DNA from: Ascoidea asiatica JCM 7603
Lineage: Eukaryota; Fungi; Ascomycota
Length of the DNA stretch: 9,538 bases
Assembly: GCA_001600695.1 (NCBI GenBank)
Contig: BCKQ01000002.1
Span: 2,046,329-2,055,866, forward strand
Direction of reading: 5' to 3'
The translations under genes were made by a program, and so were the position numbers. Under the pieces are notes generated by a model. That model searched no databases. It saw only the letters and a program-made list of their open reading frames with translations, and was not told the origin of the DNA. Below are positions 1-9,538 of this stretch, in pieces (position 1 is the stretch's first letter; every line of letters starts with the position of its first letter).

Positions 1-1
1 C

Positions 2-128
2 AGTACATTCGAGATGCACACAGAACTTCAAAGAAAGAATAAATAATGCAGACCCGTCACGTTCTAGTACATTTAACATGCACACGGAAGTTCTGAGAAC
101 GCAATAGAATGTAGTCGTGGAACAATCT
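2..128. repeat. Degenerate ~64-bp tandem repeat (2 units, partial third from ~129)
   Basis: AGTACATTcgagATGCACACaGAAcTTCaaAGAA (2-35) versus AGTACATTtaacATGCACACgGAAgTTCtgAGAA (66-99). Confidence 0.7.
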
Positions 129-168
129 ATGCAATCTTAGAAAGTCTAAGAATAGCCTAGAATATTCG
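86..168. promoter_or_regulatory. Distal heat-shock-element-like array (step-type, GAA every 10 bp)
   Basis: GAA at 87/97/107 and at 120/140/150/160, ending in GAAtaTTC (160-167); about 1 kb upstream of an Hsp30-family gene. Confidence 0.55.
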
Positions 169-543
169 AAGACAATTCTAATAAAAGAATAAAATGATTA
201 ACAATCAATAATTTCCAAATCAATTTTGGTACTTCCGACCTTGCCGGTCCTGTACACAGATCTCACATAATTTTTCCACGATTTTCCACTGCTTTTTACG
301 TTAATCCAAATAAAATTGAATCTTTGAAGTCTTATTTTGAAGTATTCGAATAAAGTCCTGACTGAAAAGCTATCACAATTCGTAATCAAGGGTATGAGTT
401 AATTCTCTTTCATGGTCATTTCAGTCACCAGGTTGATTGAAAATTAAGAGCTAATGTAAAAGTTATCTGAAATGCAAACTAATTATTTAAGAGAATAATA
501 TTCAGATTGAGTAAATTAGTTTGGAGAACATGAACATTTGCTT

Positions 544-576
544 AGAATTTCCAGGAAAAGTTAAGAATTCTTAACT
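544..576. promoter_or_regulatory. Heat-shock-element-like array overlapping an 18-bp palindrome (copy A promoter)
   Basis: GAA at 545/555/565 (aGAAttTCCagGAAaagttaaGAA); perfect palindrome AGTTAAGAATTCTTAACT at 559-576. Confidence 0.55.
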
Positions 577-800
577 CTAATTCTGGACTAGTAAGAGTGT
601 TTATGGATGTAGTGGAAGAGGAACAGAATACAAAACATATTTTAGGCCAATTTTCCAAGAATATTTTTTTTTTCCATTAGAATCCATGAATGATGATTAT
701 TAATGAAATGAGAAATGTAACAAAAAATATCTCAAGAAATTCGTCTTTAAGTCAAGATTGAATATTGAATATTCATTATCAGTCACATTTTCAAGGTATT

Positions 801-808
801 TGACGTAA
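801..808. promoter_or_regulatory. CRE-like ATF/CREB (Sko1/Aca1-type) site TGACGTAA; mirror at 9210-9217
   Basis: Exact T(G/T)ACGT(C/A)A match about 350 bp upstream of a stress-gene ATG. Confidence 0.4.
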
Positions 809-985
809 TACAGTAAAGTTGTAGTAGTTCAATCCTAAACAAGGTACAATTTGTAACGAAAAAGTATGGTAATCAATTGAAGAAGGATAAAGATTGAAAT
901 GAAAGAAGATGGGTGAGTAAATTGGTATAAATGAAGTGTAGATTCCTTTTGTTTTGAATAAAAGATATTGTAATTGATATTTATT

Positions 986-994
986 TATATATAA
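986..994 (+). promoter_or_regulatory. Candidate TATA box of HSP30 copy A (mirror 9024-9032)
   Basis: TATATATAA about 160 bp upstream of the ATG. An alternative TATAAAT lies at 926-932. The AT-rich background limits confidence. Confidence 0.4.
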
Positions 995-1150
995 TATTAA
1001 GATAATAAGATTATTTTATCAAACAGGTTTCTTTCTTTCAAACTCAATTCTACTAAATTATTAATCACTTAATAAATTATCAAAGCTCTAAATTATTAAA
1101 TTATCAAATTTCTAAATAACTATAAGACAAAACTATAAATATAAATTATA

Positions 1151-2050
1151 ATGATTGCTGATATTGTTTCTCGTGATAATGAGGCTTTAGATCTCAATCC
1201 TCCAACTGGATTAGACATGCATATTACAGAACATGGTTCAGATTGGTTATGGGCAGCATTTTCAGTATTTGCTTGTGCTACTTTATTCCATGCTTTCTTC
1301 TATTGCTGGAACCATAAGAAAAACAACTCCACAAAAGCAATTGCTCATGTTGGTCCTTTATTAGCAGCAGCTACAATGTCATATACCTATTTCACTATGG
1401 CTTCTAATTTAGGTTGGACTGATATCCAAGCAGAATTTAATCATACTACAGTTAGTGATTCATCCGAGACTCCAGGTATCAGACAAATATTTTATTCTAA
1501 ATTTGTTGGTTATTTCTTAGCTTGGCCTGCTATTTTATTTGCTGTTGAGATTGCAGGTTACGGAAAAGCCGATTATAATTTCAAATCATTGGTCCAATTA
1601 TGGGTTCAAGTTTCTTCAGTTGAAGTATTTGTTGTTGGTTTATTGATTGGTTCTTTGATTGAATCTACTTATAAATGGGGTTATTTCACATTTGCTACAA
1701 CTGCATTATTATTAGCTTTATTTGTTTCTTGCAATAGATTAGTTTCTGTTCAAAAAGCTAGTAGAAAAGTTATTTGTGTTTCTTCATTCTTAGGATTATT
1801 GTGGATCTTATATCCAATTGCTTGGGGTCTTTCAGAAGGTGGTAATGTTATTGAACCTGATTCCGAAACTGTCTTTTATGGTGTTTTAGATGTATGTCAA
1901 TTTATCTTAGTTCCAGGTTGTTTATCATTCCTTTACAAAAAAGAAGTTCTTCCAGTTTCTGAAACAGCTGCAGCAGCACCAGCTTCCAAAGAGGTCAATG
2001 ACTTTGAACCAAGAGATTCAGGAGAAACTCAAGTTCCAGAGACTGTTTAA
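1151..2050 (+). CDS. HSP30: Fungal opsin-related plasma-membrane protein (Hsp30/Yro2/Mrh1 family, bacteriorhodopsin-like 7-TM fold), copy A, 299 aa
   Basis: Intact intronless ATG-TAA ORF with about 7 hydrophobic segments. Family motifs: LNPPTG..HITEHGSDWLWAAFSVF, YFTMASNLGWT.IQAEFNH, RQIFYSKF, STYKWGYFTF, LYPIAWGLSEGGNVI.PDSE.VFYGVLD. FYSK..WP is closer to Hsp30 than to Mrh1/Yro2 as I recall them, so the subfamily call is less certain than the family call. Confidence 0.92.
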   Translation: MIADIVSRDNEALDLNPPTGLDMHITEHGSDWLWAAFSVFACATLFHAFFYCWNHKKNNSTKAIAHVGPLLAAATMSYTYFTMASNLGWTDIQAEFNHTTVSDSSETPGIRQIFYSKFVGYFLAWPAILFAVEIAGYGKADYNFKSLVQLWVQVSSVEVFVVGLLIGSLIESTYKWGYFTFATTALLLALFVSCNRLVSVQKASRKVICVSSFLGLLWILYPIAWGLSEGGNVIEPDSETVFYGVLDVCQFILVPGCLSFLYKKEVLPVSETAAAAPASKEVNDFEPRDSGETQVPETV

Positions 2051-3051
2051 TTGTCCTTGCATTTTGCAAATTTCTTTTGACTTATTCAATTAGGTCGAAT
2101 TGAAAACTTTTTTTTTCTGTTTCTTAACAATATCACGATTCTATGATCTTTTTACGATCTGATGACTTACTACTGTTCCTTCTAATTTCAAATTTCAAAT
2201 TCCTAATTCTTTATACTTTCTTTTTTTTCAATTGGTGTGGCCTAGGTTCTTGTTGGGCTTTTAATTATTAATTTTTTTTTACTATTTTCTTATATAGGTT
2301 ATGATCAAATCAATACATTTCTTTTTATCCTTTTTCAAATAACTGCCGTTCGTCTATTACTTGTAATGAAATTTGTTTCTTATATTGGAAAAGACTTTGA
2401 AGAGGTTAAGTAATATTGAAACAAAAACTTATTACTACTCAATTGAATGCCAAAAATTTTTGATTTTTCGGCCTTTTCGTACTACAACTTTTCTGTTTAA
2501 CTTTATTATCTAAGAAAAATATTCAATTGTTGGAGGGATTATATAAGTAAATTCTGACAAAAAAAGAATGAAAAAGTACTTTTCTTTTCATAAACCTAGG
2601 AACATACAAAGAATTGCAATTGAAAATTCAGCTTCTTGGCTTTTGAATGAATCTCCGATCAAGCTATACGTTTTACCTCATTTCTGCAATACTTTATAAA
2701 AACCGAAAAATGTATTAAATCTCAATATTCACTGTGACTAAAATGTTCTTTAGATGTACAATATAAGAGCTCACTATAAATTTTTTAACACACTTTAATC
2801 ACATTCTTGGTTTTGTTTTATAACTGGAATAAGAATAAAACACTTACTATGGGTTTTGGAAACTAACTGTTAGCTAGACTGGTAGGCAAAAAAAAAAAGT
2901 TCAAAAAATTTTGGTAAAATTTAAAAAAAATAGTAATTCAAAATAATTAAAGAATTTTTTCCATCCGCCTTTTAAATAAGCAAAAAAAATTATAGAATTT
3001 CTCAAACACCACTTAAATCATTGACTTCGATTAAAGAAATAGGGAATAAAG

Positions 3052-4427
3052 CTATGAAGGCAGGGACAAGTATATATTTTTATTACTTTTTGAGATGTTA
3101 TTGTTCGAGATATCTTGGTTTAACAGTTCAATATCATTATAAATAACAACATCGTGATAGCCTCTAAGTATATGTAACTTCATATCAGATTTATATCTTG
3201 GATAAGCAATATTCTTTTTAATCCATTCTATTGAGCAAACCGATGATAAATTTATGATAGAATATTGAGAAGGGAATGAAGAAATAGAAGAAGATAGGGT
3301 TGGTTCGCTATAATGGCTTGTCCCTCGGTTGATATTTGGAAGAGTTTGGTAATGCATACCTTTTTCACCTTCCATAGGATGGAAAGTTTCTAATTTAACA
3401 ATTTTACTAGTGGAATCTCTAATAACTTTCACAAAAGTTAAATCTGAAATTTTAAATGCTTTCAATAATCCTTTGCATATGTCAAATTCATCGGAGGAAT
3501 CTACGTGGCTTTCATTACAATCAGGGAAAGTCAAAGGTAACATTTTATGTGAAGAATGAGTATAGTTGTAAAACTGATCGAACTTGATCTTCAAGTCGTT
3601 TTTATCAATTTTTGAGAAATGAATAAGCTCTTTATTAGTTAGATGACATAATACTTCAGGGAGGCAGCTATGAAGAACAAACCTGGCTCGAATATTAGAA
3701 GAGAATGGTCTTCCTTGTGCTTTATAAGCACCATTTCCTTTTTGTATTGAAGAGGTACTTTTTTTTTGCAAAATTGTTTTTCGGTAAAATTCCAATTATT
3801 CTTCGGTTGGCTATAATTCACAATAAACAGATTTTCCTGTGGATAATTAGCCAAAATTCTACTAGTATTATTTATTATTTTATGATGGAAACCATTCATT
3901 TGACTGATCATTAACTGTGAAGTGCTTCTAGTGCTTGAAAAGTTTTCAGAATAATTGCTTCCAATCATATAACGTTGATATAATCTATCACCTTCACTTC
4001 CACAAAAATTCTTGGTTAAATCATCTCTCGTTTTTAGAAACAGATTGTTAGCTGAATGACATTCGGGGCTGATATTATTTAAGCAATTTTTTTTATTAGG
4101 TTGTAAGTTGTAAGGACATTTATCTAATTTCATGGAGTTATCATTATAATCACGTTTATTGTTATTGTTATTATTTGTTTTATAAAGGTTTTTTTCAAGA
4201 TTTTTACTGTCTTTTAATTGGGAAGAGTTATCATAATACTGATCAGACTGATATGGAATGGTTATATTTTGTGCTGAAGACTTAGTCGAGTTTTCAATTG
4301 AAGGTAATAAAGTTGTTTTATTTTTAACATTTATAAAGTTTGAAAAAGGTAGAGTTTTTTTTGACAAATTTTCTTCTCTAGGATTTAAAATATTGTCAAG
4401 GTGCATTGCATCTTTGGAAGATCTCAT
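3052..4427 (-). CDS. Unidentified protein, probably one ~458-aa gene interrupted by a 1-nt frameshift near 3759-3767 (putative transcriptional regulator; may be a sequencing error or pseudogene)
   Basis: Two long overlapping same-strand ORFs (4427-3639 and 3795-3052) in very AT-rich DNA. The downstream ORF begins at TTG directly after a stop and has no nearby ATG. Adding one A to the A9 run gives a continuous 1377-nt frame (..FCKKK|STSSIQKG..). Asn/Ser-rich N-half, globular-looking C-half. Confidence 0.7.
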
Positions 4428-7400
4428 ACTTGAATAGAATTTAAACTGAACTATATGAATATATCTACCGGTAAGAATAAAAAGATCAATGATTTAAAAG
4501 AAAAACTGCAAGTTAGGTGAAAGAAAAAAAATATAAATAAAATTAATTCAAATAAAGAAAAAAGTACTTCCATGAAAAGAAAGCACCTTTATTTGATTTA
4601 TATCTTAAATTATTGTAGGGAGCTTTTATGCACTCAAAACCAATTAATAAATGAAGAGGTAGACTAGATAATTGATTAATATTGAAAAAAAATAACAAAA
4701 ATATTGAAACTTTTTTGAAGTAATTTCAACTCTTTTTTTTGGTAAAACGCTAATCTTTTCAAATTCAATCTTTCTTTGAAATTATTTTCAAAATATTTTT
4801 ATAGCCAACCCCATAATCAATAAATGCTGAAATGCAACAAAGAAACTATATTGATTGGACTGTAGCTAAGTTCCTTGGTTTTCCATTCAAGAAAAACGCA
4901 AATTGGCAAAGCACATAGAATCAAAAGTTCAGATCAAACACAGTAAGGTTAACATACAGTTTTTGTAGGCTGGAAATTTAAACTCAAAAACAAAGTATTC
5001 CTGAATCCAGTAATCAGGCATTCTATAAGATGATGATAGGCTGTGAACGATTATTTCGTACATCTTCAAAAGTACTGGTTCCTAAATATCTATATGAAAT
5101 TTGAGTCAAAAATTATAAGTTGCTATTGTCTGGATTCACATTTAGATGTTTATATTGTACTGTATTTCAAGAATTTCCAAAAAGGGAATCTTTTTTGCAA
5201 AGTAGGTCCAATTGCTGCTGGGAAGCTTCCGCAACCATCCGCAATTTTATAATAGATTAATCAAAAATTTCTTACAAAGACTAAAACTCAAGCCTTCAGA
5301 GAGCCTGAAATATATTTTTATTTTTGAGTTATTACATTGCCAGGAGTTAATTTTTAAAAGAATAATTAGAAAGTATTGGAAAAAAGGGTAGAAATTGTTT
5401 GCAAGTTGGATGAACGATGGTTTTGGTTTGAATCGGAAATCCAGTTTAAATGTTATTTGAATGATAATCTTTCTTCTAAATTCTAAAAAAAAAAGATTAT
5501 CAATTGGCCTGTATTTTTTCAAATAATAAATTCATTAATATTGAATGTTCTCAGTTATTTTTTGAAAAAAAAAATATAGCGGCCTGCTATAATGAAAAAG
5601 CTTTTAAAGTAAACAGAATATCAAAACTTATTTTTTTTTGTTTTGTTCCTTTTTCTTCAAAAGAATAGCTCAACGTGATCATTACCTTTTTTCCAAAATG
5701 CTTCAACATATTTTGTAAAATATTAAACAGTTTATTCTAAATGCGATAGGTAAATGGTTTTTGAAACATAAAAAAGCTACCAGTATTCAACATCACTTTT
5801 GTTTATTGAATCTGCCTATCAAATTACTTAGGGCAAATTTTTTTTTCTATAGTGACTTATGAAACAAAAAGATATTGAACGTATACGGGCAATTTCTATT
5901 TCTCAAATATTCTCCATTGAGTTTTGATATTTGTGACTACCTTTATAAAAATTAATATATAGTAATAAAGTTATAATAGTATATCAATGCATCTTGAAAT
6001 CGATAACATGGTAATGTAAATTTGGAGATAACAAAAATAAACTACTTTGATTGAAATAGTTTTTTCTCTGATAATTTGAGAATCACTGGAAAATAATAAT
6101 CACCTGAAGCTCAAAGCTAAGGTATATTTAATATACTGATTAACATTGAGTAACTTTGAATTCGAAGATCAATTTTTGGTACTGTGCTGCACTGCAGAGT
6201 ATTAAAAAAATAATTATGGGGTATGTTCTAAATTTTGATTATGATCATTTGAAGTGATTAATTTAGCTCAAAAATTTTCTAGTATGCTTTGTATTTTATA
6301 TTTTCAGTTACCAGTGAGTTTTTAAATAATAAAAAATTGCAATATTGACTCTGACAATAAGATTAAGAATTCTAAAAATTCATGAAGTCCAAGAAAAAGA
6401 AATCGAATTTCAAATTTTATTATAACATAGCCCTCACTTGCATTGAATGAGTTAAATATTATTTCATATTTATTTCTAATAGCTTCCAAAAATAGCCAGC
6501 AATAGAAAAATATTCAATGAAATATTCATTATCACCCATTAAAATAATTTAGCAGAAGATTTCTATTTGCACTTAAAGCATAAGTATAACCTGCTAAACC
6601 TCATAAACGAAAATACCAAAAAGAATAAAAATTAAACTAACTTAATTTTATTTGAATGAGACAAATTGAATAGTTAAATGAGTTTAATATCTCCTCGATA
6701 TATTCATCATGTCAGAAATCATATAAGGACTTTAGCTGGTATCACTAACAAGAAATCTTAAGATCAAATTTTTTAGATAATGGTTCTGAAAGAATTATTT
6801 GAAAGAAAAATAAAGATTGGTTAAACTTTTGGATTGAGATTTTCTGTTACAATGGTAACCCTTGTTTCAAAGAATTATCAAGGAACATTATTTATAGGAC
6901 AAAAAAAATTAAAAGAAATAGAAATTGTTTTTACAATGCATTTCTTTTATTTTGGAGAAGTTTTGATCGGTACAAACTTTGTATAATTTGTCAAATTTTA
7001 TATCAGTCATTTCATTATTTATTTTAAAAGTTGGAACTCTTTACCTAAAAAAAATATTTATTTATTGATTGTCCTAGCATCTTGCAGAACTTCTGGAGCA
7101 GAAATACTTATTCAAACTGGCGGAAGTACGGCTAGGCTAAGAAGACGATTGAAAAAGACCCAAATATATGGTCTCAATGACAGGTACATTTGGTTTCTCT
7201 TTAGTGCAGAGAAATGCGGTATTTAGGATTTCATAACTAACCTAAATAATGCGGTTCCCATAAGTAACGTTAATGTTAATATTACAAAGAAAGCAGAGTC
7301 AAGAAAATGTAATAAAATCAACTAAGAAGCATCAGAAATTTAAAAATCCTACAAAAAAGGAGTTTAATCAAAGGTTTGCAATAAAAACCAAGAGATTCAA

Positions 7401-7967
7401 TGTATAATTTTTATTTTAGGGTTAAAAAAACATCCCTGAAATCTACGAATATTGTTAAGGTGTATTTTTAAAAAGAAAATATACTAAACACAGAAAATTA
7501 CTTTTTGGAAAAAGAAAATACATTTTCCTTGTTCATTTTCAAATCAATCATTTAAACAGGAAACCCAGCATTATCCAGTTAACTTCTTTTTTCTCATAAA
7601 TTTTTATTGTCAGAATCTGTTTTTTTTTAAAAAAGTTTTGACTTGATTTCATTACAAGTAATAGACGAACGGCAGTTATTTGAAAAAGGATAAAAAGAAA
7701 TGTATTGATTTGATCATAACCTATATAAGAAAATAGTAAAAAAAAATTAATAATTAAAAGCCCAACAAGAACCTAGGCCACACCAATTGAAAAAAAAGAA
7801 AGTATAAAGAATTAGGAATTTGAAATTTGAAATTAGAAGGAACAGTAGTAAGTCATCAGATCGTAAAAAGATCATAGAATCGTGATATTGTTAAGAAACA
7901 GAAAAAAAAAGTTTTCAATTCGACCTAATTGAATAAGTCAAAAGAAATTTGCAAAATGCAAGGACAA

Positions 7968-8867
7968 TTAAACAGTCTCTGGAACTTGAGTTTCTCCTGA
8001 ATCTCTTGGTTCAAAGTCATTGACCTCTTTGGAAGCTGGTGCTGCTGCAGCTGTTTCAGAAACTGGAAGAACTTCTTTTTTGTAAAGGAATGATAAACAA
8101 CCTGGAACTAAGATAAATTGACATACATCTAAAACACCATAAAAGACAGTTTCGGAATCAGGTTCAATAACATTACCACCTTCTGAAAGACCCCAAGCAA
8201 TTGGATATAAGATCCACAATAATCCTAAGAATGAAGAAACACAAATAACTTTTCTACTAGCTTTTTGAACAGAAACTAATCTATTGCAAGAAACAAATAA
8301 AGCTAATAATAATGCAGTTGTAGCAAATGTGAAATAACCCCATTTATAAGTAGATTCAATCAAAGAACCAATCAATAAACCAACAACAAATACTTCAACT
8401 GAAGAAACTTGAACCCATAATTGGACCAATGATTTGAAATTATAATCGGCTTTTCCGTAACCTGCAATCTCAACAGCAAATAAAATAGCAGGCCAAGCTA
8501 AGAAATAACCAACAAATTTAGAATAAAATATTTGTCTGATACCTGGAGTCTCGGATGAATCACTAACTGTAGTATGATTAAATTCTGCTTGGATATCAGT
8601 CCAACCTAAATTAGAAGCCATAGTGAAATAGGTATATGACATTGTAGCTGCTGCTAATAAAGGACCAACATGAGCAATTGCTTTTGTGGAGTTGTTTTTC
8701 TTATGGTTCCAGCAATAGAAGAAAGCATGGAATAAAGTAGCACAAGCAAATACTGAAAATGCTGCCCATAACCAATCTGAACCATGTTCTGTAATATGCA
8801 TGTCTAATCCAGTTGGAGGATTGAGATCTAAAGCCTCATTATCACGAGAAACAATATCAGCAATCAT
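7968..8867 (-). CDS. HSP30: Fungal opsin-related protein (Hsp30 family), copy B, identical 299-aa translation to copy A
   Basis: Reverse complement of 1151-2050 (mirror coordinates sum to 10018); same protein sequence. Confidence 0.92.
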   Translation of the reverse strand: MIADIVSRDNEALDLNPPTGLDMHITEHGSDWLWAAFSVFACATLFHAFFYCWNHKKNNSTKAIAHVGPLLAAATMSYTYFTMASNLGWTDIQAEFNHTTVSDSSETPGIRQIFYSKFVGYFLAWPAILFAVEIAGYGKADYNFKSLVQLWVQVSSVEVFVVGLLIGSLIESTYKWGYFTFATTALLLALFVSCNRLVSVQKASRKVICVSSFLGLLWILYPIAWGLSEGGNVIEPDSETVFYGVLDVCQFILVPGCLSFLYKKEVLPVSETAAAAPASKEVNDFEPRDSGETQVPETV

Positions 8868-9441
8868 TATAATTTATATTTATAGTTTTGTCTTATAGTT
8901 ATTTAGAAATTTGATAATTTAATAATTTAGAGCTTTGATAATTTATTAAGTGATTAATAATTTAGTAGAATTGAGTTTGAAAGAAAGAAACCTGTTTGAT
9001 AAAATAATCTTATTATCTTAATATTATATATAAATAAATATCAATTACAATATCTTTTATTCAAAACAAAAGGAATCTACACTTCATTTATACCAATTTA
9101 CTCACCCATCTTCTTTCATTTCAATCTTTATCCTTCTTCAATTGATTACCATACTTTTTCGTTACAAATTGTACCTTGTTTAGGATTGAACTACTACAAC
9201 TTTACTGTATTACGTCAAATACCTTGAAAATGTGACTGATAATGAATATTCAATATTCAATCTTGACTTAAAGACGAATTTCTTGAGATATTTTTTGTTA
9301 CATTTCTCATTTCATTAATAATCATCATTCATGGATTCTAATGGAAAAAAAAAATATTCTTGGAAAATTGGCCTAAAATATGTTTTGTATTCTGTTCCTC
9401 TTCCACTACATCCATAAACACTCTTACTAGTCCAGAATTAG

Positions 9442-9474
9442 AGTTAAGAATTCTTAACTTTTCCTGGAAATTCT
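9442..9474. promoter_or_regulatory. Mirror copy of the HSE-like array and palindrome (copy B promoter)
   Basis: Reverse complement of 544-576. Confidence 0.55.
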
Positions 9475-9538
9475 AAGCAAATGTTCATGTTCTCCAAACT
9501 AATTTACTCAATCTGAATATTATTCTCTTAAATAATTA

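Follow-up and report, generated by a model that had tools for sequence, protein, structure and literature searches.

A gene-containing inverted repeat around a potentially invertible 5.3-kb segment in Ascoidea asiatica

Architecture of the inverted repeat and its surroundings

The window, i.e., the whole stretch of 9,538 nucleotides of Ascoidea asiatica JCM 7603 DNA that was analysed, corresponds to positions 2046329-2055866 of scaffold C2 in a 20.3-Mb assembly of 71 pieces. The overall structure consists of a left arm (480-2372, + strand), a unique core of 5273 bp (2373-7645) and a right arm (7646-9538, - strand), which carries the same sequence as the left arm and stops at the contig end. 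Each arm contains 671 bp of upstream DNA, an HSP30-like open reading frame (ORF) and 322 bp of downstream DNA. In this one assembly, the arms are 1893 nt each and 100% complementary at a spacing of 5273 nt, confirming the two identical arms reported in a preliminary description of this DNA. The runner-up inverted pair not derived from the arms measures 41 nt at 71% identity, so that the arm pair lies far above chance.

The repeat was earlier said to be at least 1893 bp long; the figure stands, while the open end does not, since comparison of the flanks with shuffled sequences shows that the DNA past both ends is unrelated and the length is exactly 1893 bp. Specifically, the score of the outer-flank comparison was reached in 21 of 200 shuffles, and that of the inner-flank comparison in 5 of 200, the latter reflecting a single short AT-rich match away from the junction. 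The arms thus have four distinct and unique junctions, two outer and two inner. Neither a target-site duplication nor decayed homology was detected beyond the arm ends when both ends were compared. We also considered the arm as a transposed element and rejected this, because it lacks terminal repeats and a target-site duplication and its copies are confined to the locus. Searches of the window for tRNA genes, Rfam families and long tandem arrays found none. The core is potentially invertible, its orientation being given here as assembled, and the geometry is right for the proposal that a crossover between the arms would invert it.

On the left side, 272 bp of unique DNA separate the arm from a decayed Ty3/gypsy-type retrotransposon, whose terminal LTR end occupies positions 1-207 of the window and is not part of the repeat. 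The element (L010:5714-10000 in the local coordinates of the fetched stretch, plus window 1-207) is full-length, with LTRs of about 494 bp that are 95% identical, TG...CA ends, a 4-bp target duplication and a coding region in several broken ORFs; its LTR has at least 40 matches genome-wide. Further out follow a GST-like gene and CWH41, both about 6 kb outside the left arm, VPS25 and a probable beta-glucosidase gene. A 658-aa ORF without a Pfam match (L012:5161-7137, - strand) was observed about 13 kb to the left of the window. On the right side, an MTP18-like gene ends 389 bp from the arm and is followed by a GH76 gene, BRR2 and an alcohol dehydrogenase gene.

Intact housekeeping genes continue through 20 kb on both sides, and the locus is 2.05 Mb from one end of the scaffold and 448 kb from the other. 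Judged by gene content, no telomere, centromere or gene desert is evident within 20 kb of either arm, and with housekeeping genes close by and the nearer scaffold end 448 kb off, no silencing domain is evident either. The idea that a centromere, telomere or heterochromatin might lie beyond one of the arms is therefore not borne out by these gene-rich flanks, in which nothing resembles a telomere or centromere. Within 20 kb, no ORF was recognisable as a recombinase or transposase; a search for Flp-type recombinases gave no match, but neither did its controls, so that this blank result carries no weight. From the gene within the core, the nearest DNA that would differ between orientations is more than 2.5 kb away at the 3' end and more than 5 kb away at the promoter. 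Upstream activating sequences of yeast usually act over far shorter distances than the latter.

Genes of the arms and the core

The HSP30-like gene of the left arm (1151-2050, + strand) encodes 299 aa, and the identical gene of the right arm lies at 7968-8867 (- strand); both point into the core. The protein matches PF01036 (Bac_rhodopsin) over the cut-off with E=3.7e-13. Its best match is Hsp30 of Ascoidea rubescens at 61% identity, named yeast Hsp30 proteins share 40-60% identity with it, and it is weakly similar to solved fungal and algal rhodopsins. In helix G, a Phe occupies position D+4, which we take to be the position of the retinal (Schiff-base) lysine in rhodopsins. On these matches, the arm gene is predicted to encode an opsin-related membrane protein of the Hsp30/Yro2/Mrh1 type. 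Like the fungal proteins of that group, it has a bacteriorhodopsin-like domain, clusters with yeast Hsp30 and lacks the retinal-binding lysine; it differs in copy number and arrangement, with two identical copies in inverted orientation and an older paralogue elsewhere on the same scaffold.

A search of the arm promoter found neither a perfect three-unit heat-shock element nor an STRE. Just 5' of the start codon, both arms carry a 24-bp tandem repeat in two copies (1069-1117 and 8901-8949). With regard to codon usage, CTG codons number 0 in the HSP30 ORF versus about five in the two ORFs of the core; A. asiatica has been published as a species that decodes CUG as either Ser or Leu.

The core contains one inner gene (3052-4427, - strand), which is divided into two overlapping ORFs (3639-4427 and 3052-3795) and comprises a low-complexity N-terminal half and a conserved C-terminal domain. 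Its upstream region (4428-7645) spans 3.2 kb with only two short ORFs of 69 and 91 aa. The first ORF starts with the N-terminal motif of a 647-aa paralogue on scaffold C3, and the second matches the C-terminal domain of the same paralogue at about 41-45%; since they match successive parts of one protein, both ORFs belong to one gene. The frame changes between about 3795 and 3750, in a stretch that holds A5 and A9 tracts. An intron restoring the frame was considered and rejected: although a branch-like site and an AG are present near 3840, stop codons block the frame downstream of them as far as 3795. Both ORFs are too long for chance at the local base composition (P about 1e-8 each), identity to the paralogue by codon position is 0.60/0.67/0.50, and the aligned domain retains every residue that is invariant in the family. 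ORF length, codon-position pattern and kept residues together indicate that the inner gene was functional until recently, or that the frameshift is erroneous or confined to one allele.

The preliminary description had called this gene an orphan, which does not hold. A second paralogue is present on scaffold C1, giving three family members in the genome (window 3052-3795, - strand; L016:331-2274 and L017:364-3153, in local coordinates of the fetched stretches), and a profile search with the family collected 147 clusters at 50% identity. The named members come from Saccharomycopsis, Pichia, Babjeviella, Millerozyma and Scheffersomyces, and all are hypothetical proteins. By profile similarity, the inner gene is a predicted member of an unnamed family found throughout the Saccharomycotina. 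The family gave no match in Pfam, PDB-sequence, Atlas or Foldseek searches, and the window ORF by itself retrieved nothing in a word search. One member bears the UniRef name 'Required for respiratory growth protein 8'; we did not adopt this automatic label, for which there is no Pfam support. The domain model of a family member (mean pLDDT 75.5) has a predicted alpha/beta fold, and its top structural neighbours are nearly all ubiquitin-like beta-grasp proteins at Z 4-5, a hint that the domain may be similar to a beta-grasp carrying large insertions. A regulatory role is possible in view of the basic motifs and the low-complexity N-terminus. A conserved budding-yeast domain family without a name or a Pfam model may be worth more than the repeat itself.

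Assembly state and copy number of the arm

The window is one whole N-free contig, bounded by an N at position 0 and by a 100-N gap at 9539-9638. Past the gap, a third identical arm copy (window-equivalent 9639-11531) runs the same way as the right arm and shares both its end points; genome-wide searches accordingly list three copies of the arm sequence, and the exact arm protein is on record on no independent contig. One contig ends at the last base of the repeat and the next starts at its first base, a pattern typical of an assembler; on this ground the third copy is probably a duplicate of the right arm introduced during assembly. The order at the locus would then be left flank, arm, core, inverted arm and right flank. 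If one repeat unit was indeed written on both sides of the join, the perfect match between the arms may in part be a product of the assembly, and the orientation in which the core is drawn is provisional. A single assembly, interrupted by a gap right at the repeat, underlies what is given here for arm identity, copy number (2 or 3) and core orientation, and mixed orientations in the sequenced DNA could have caused the contig break.

An artefact of assembly or haplotype could take several forms: three real copies, sequence hidden in the gap, arms on different diploid homologues, or differing arms collapsed to a consensus. Such readings draw on the third copy, which is co-terminal with the repeat and abuts the gap as if one repeat unit had been written several times, and on the description of the strain as diploid (PMC6692504). 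However, neither a single copy nor a heterozygous inversion of arm plus core would give four distinct unique junctions. The distribution of single-N ambiguous bases, 11 in 2.6 kb of the adjacent retrotransposon and 0 in the arms, also speaks against an artefact, and no alternative haplotig of the core was found in the assembly. We regard an artefact as unlikely, though worth bearing in mind, and take the four junctions and the absence of ambiguous bases in the arms as arguments for two genuine copies that are identical or almost so. Gene annotation on this assembly would show three identical HSP30 genes, whereas the real number is probably two.

Origin of the repeat and comparison with known inversion systems

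An older HSP30 paralogue is located 180 kb away on the same scaffold, with 81% identity to the arm gene in DNA (coding region only) and 76% in protein. In the tree, the arm gene, this paralogue and a single A. rubescens gene are grouped at 99/99 (identity 76% vs 58%). A. rubescens has one orthologue of the arm gene, which lies in a different neighbourhood, and no inverted repeat of at least 50 nt was found in 20 kb around either of its HSP30 homologues; a comparison with the sister species, as advised in the preliminary description, thus finds the repeat absent there. The genes flanking the A. rubescens orthologue, IPP1 and the mitochondrial Asn-tRNA synthetase gene, are 8 kb apart on A. asiatica scaffold C5 (283407-293843), and no HSP30 match lies between them. 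Given that these two genes are together on C5 and that all HSP30 copies are on C2, HSP30 moved in one of the two lineages. A separate A. asiatica orthologue of the second opsin-family gene of A. rubescens was not found. Because A. rubescens has a single orthologue and lacks the repeat, the repeat is not common to both species and is the most recent addition in a small expansion of this gene in the A. asiatica lineage. The unrelated flanks and the missing target-site duplication would fit a recent duplication, or a fully converted tract with decayed margins.

We favour, at a probability of roughly three in four, a young, lineage-specific inverted duplication of the whole HSP30-like unit, whose core could invert on rare occasions without effect. 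The unit, with promoter, ORF and terminator, would have been copied in reverse 5.3 kb away by a repair or template-switch event, and the identity of the arms would derive from the recency of this event, from gene conversion between the arms, or from both. From time to time, the core would be inverted when ordinary non-allelic homologous recombination between the arms ends in a crossover. Since the identical arms give every gene the same surroundings for at least 1.9 kb in either orientation, and both HSP30 transcription units are left unchanged, the inversion would be neutral, and any selective value may lie in the extra HSP30 dosage. The neutral inversion polymorphism that had been named as a fallback is accordingly the better reading.

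The reading put first in the preliminary description, a non-MAT inversion switch, finds no support here. Spelled out as a mechanism, stress-induced transcription of the two HSP30 copies would promote recombination, and the expression of the inner gene would depend on orientation through a difference between the outer flanks, for instance the retrotransposon on the left. The flanks do differ, with a retrotransposon on the left only; the arms are similar in length to the FF1 mating-type repeats (2 kb in A. rubescens, PMC6692504); and the inner protein combines a low-complexity N-terminus with a conserved basic domain, a build that would suit a regulator. On the other side, the arms adjoin no centromere, telomere or gene desert but genes at 389 bp (MTP18-like) and about 6 kb (GST and CWH41), no recombinase was recognised within 20 kb, more than 5 kb separate the inner promoter from the closest DNA that would differ, the inner gene carries a frameshift, and the structure is absent from A. 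rubescens. We consider a regulated switch extremely improbable. Non-mating-type phase variation, in which a stress-triggered flip of the core, through orientation or through slippage in the A-tracts at the frameshift, would set production of a putative regulator from the yeast-wide family, is just as hard to credit.

A regional centromere of the inverted-repeat type, known from Komagataella and Barnettozyma, in which Cse4 would occupy the AT-rich core, is likewise highly improbable. Arm size and identity do fall within the published range (0.5-4.3 kb and 99-100%, PMC12711049), the core has about 25% GC with 3.2 kb free of long ORFs, and a retrotransposon adjoins. But the non-coding DNA of the arms has 25% GC as well, both arms consist of intact genes and the gene in the core has been under recent coding constraint, whereas the Barnettozyma peaks lie in long intergenic regions (PMC12711049).

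The favoured duplication with a neutral inversion has close counterparts. In the flip/flop (FF) region of Saccharomyces cerevisiae chromosome XIV (YNL018C/YNL034W), a near-identical multi-kb inverted repeat of whole genes likewise surrounds unique DNA without MAT (PMC9731477). This region is invertible by non-allelic recombination, breaks short-read assemblies and has no known orientation phenotype, and the mechanism proposed for it is the one that we propose for A. asiatica (PMC9731477). The two differ in size, with 4.2-kb repeats around 24 kb in S. cerevisiae and 1.9-kb repeats around 5.3 kb in A. asiatica. They also differ in conservation: the FF region has been conserved for at least 17 Myr with both orientations demonstrated, whereas the A. 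asiatica repeat is absent from A. rubescens and known in one assembled orientation. The gene-containing, neutral repeat of S. cerevisiae showed 0 flips in about 53,800 mitoses (PMC9731477). In Candida albicans, inversions of 4-100 kb usually have their breakpoints in long inverted repeats that contain paralogues (1.7-3 kb, >98% identity), and 8 of 9 inversions fell in long repeats containing ORFs (PMC6591007); the genes and the lineage are different, and in A. asiatica the inversion is a potential only.

The FF1 mating-type flip-flop of Ogataea polymorpha and A. rubescens shares with this locus a single inverted repeat of about 2 kb and no recognised site-specific recombinase (PMC6692504, PMC5720833). 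In contrast, the A. asiatica core has no MAT genes, and no adjacent centromere or telomere silences one end. A. asiatica is considered a heterothallic diploid, and its MAT locus is placed between ADR1 and MHP1 (PMC6692504). Consistent with the earlier remark that the cargo is not MAT, the core holds one non-MAT gene and the PF04769 (MATalpha1) matches are confined to scaffold C50, so the repeat is outside the mating-type flip-flop family.

Gene-containing inverted repeats that permit neutral inversions have already been described in Saccharomyces and Candida, and the A. asiatica repeat is a further example. It is raw material of the kind behind the flip-flop mating-type switches, which have about ten origins in yeasts, and the sister species A. 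rubescens is itself a known flip-flopper.
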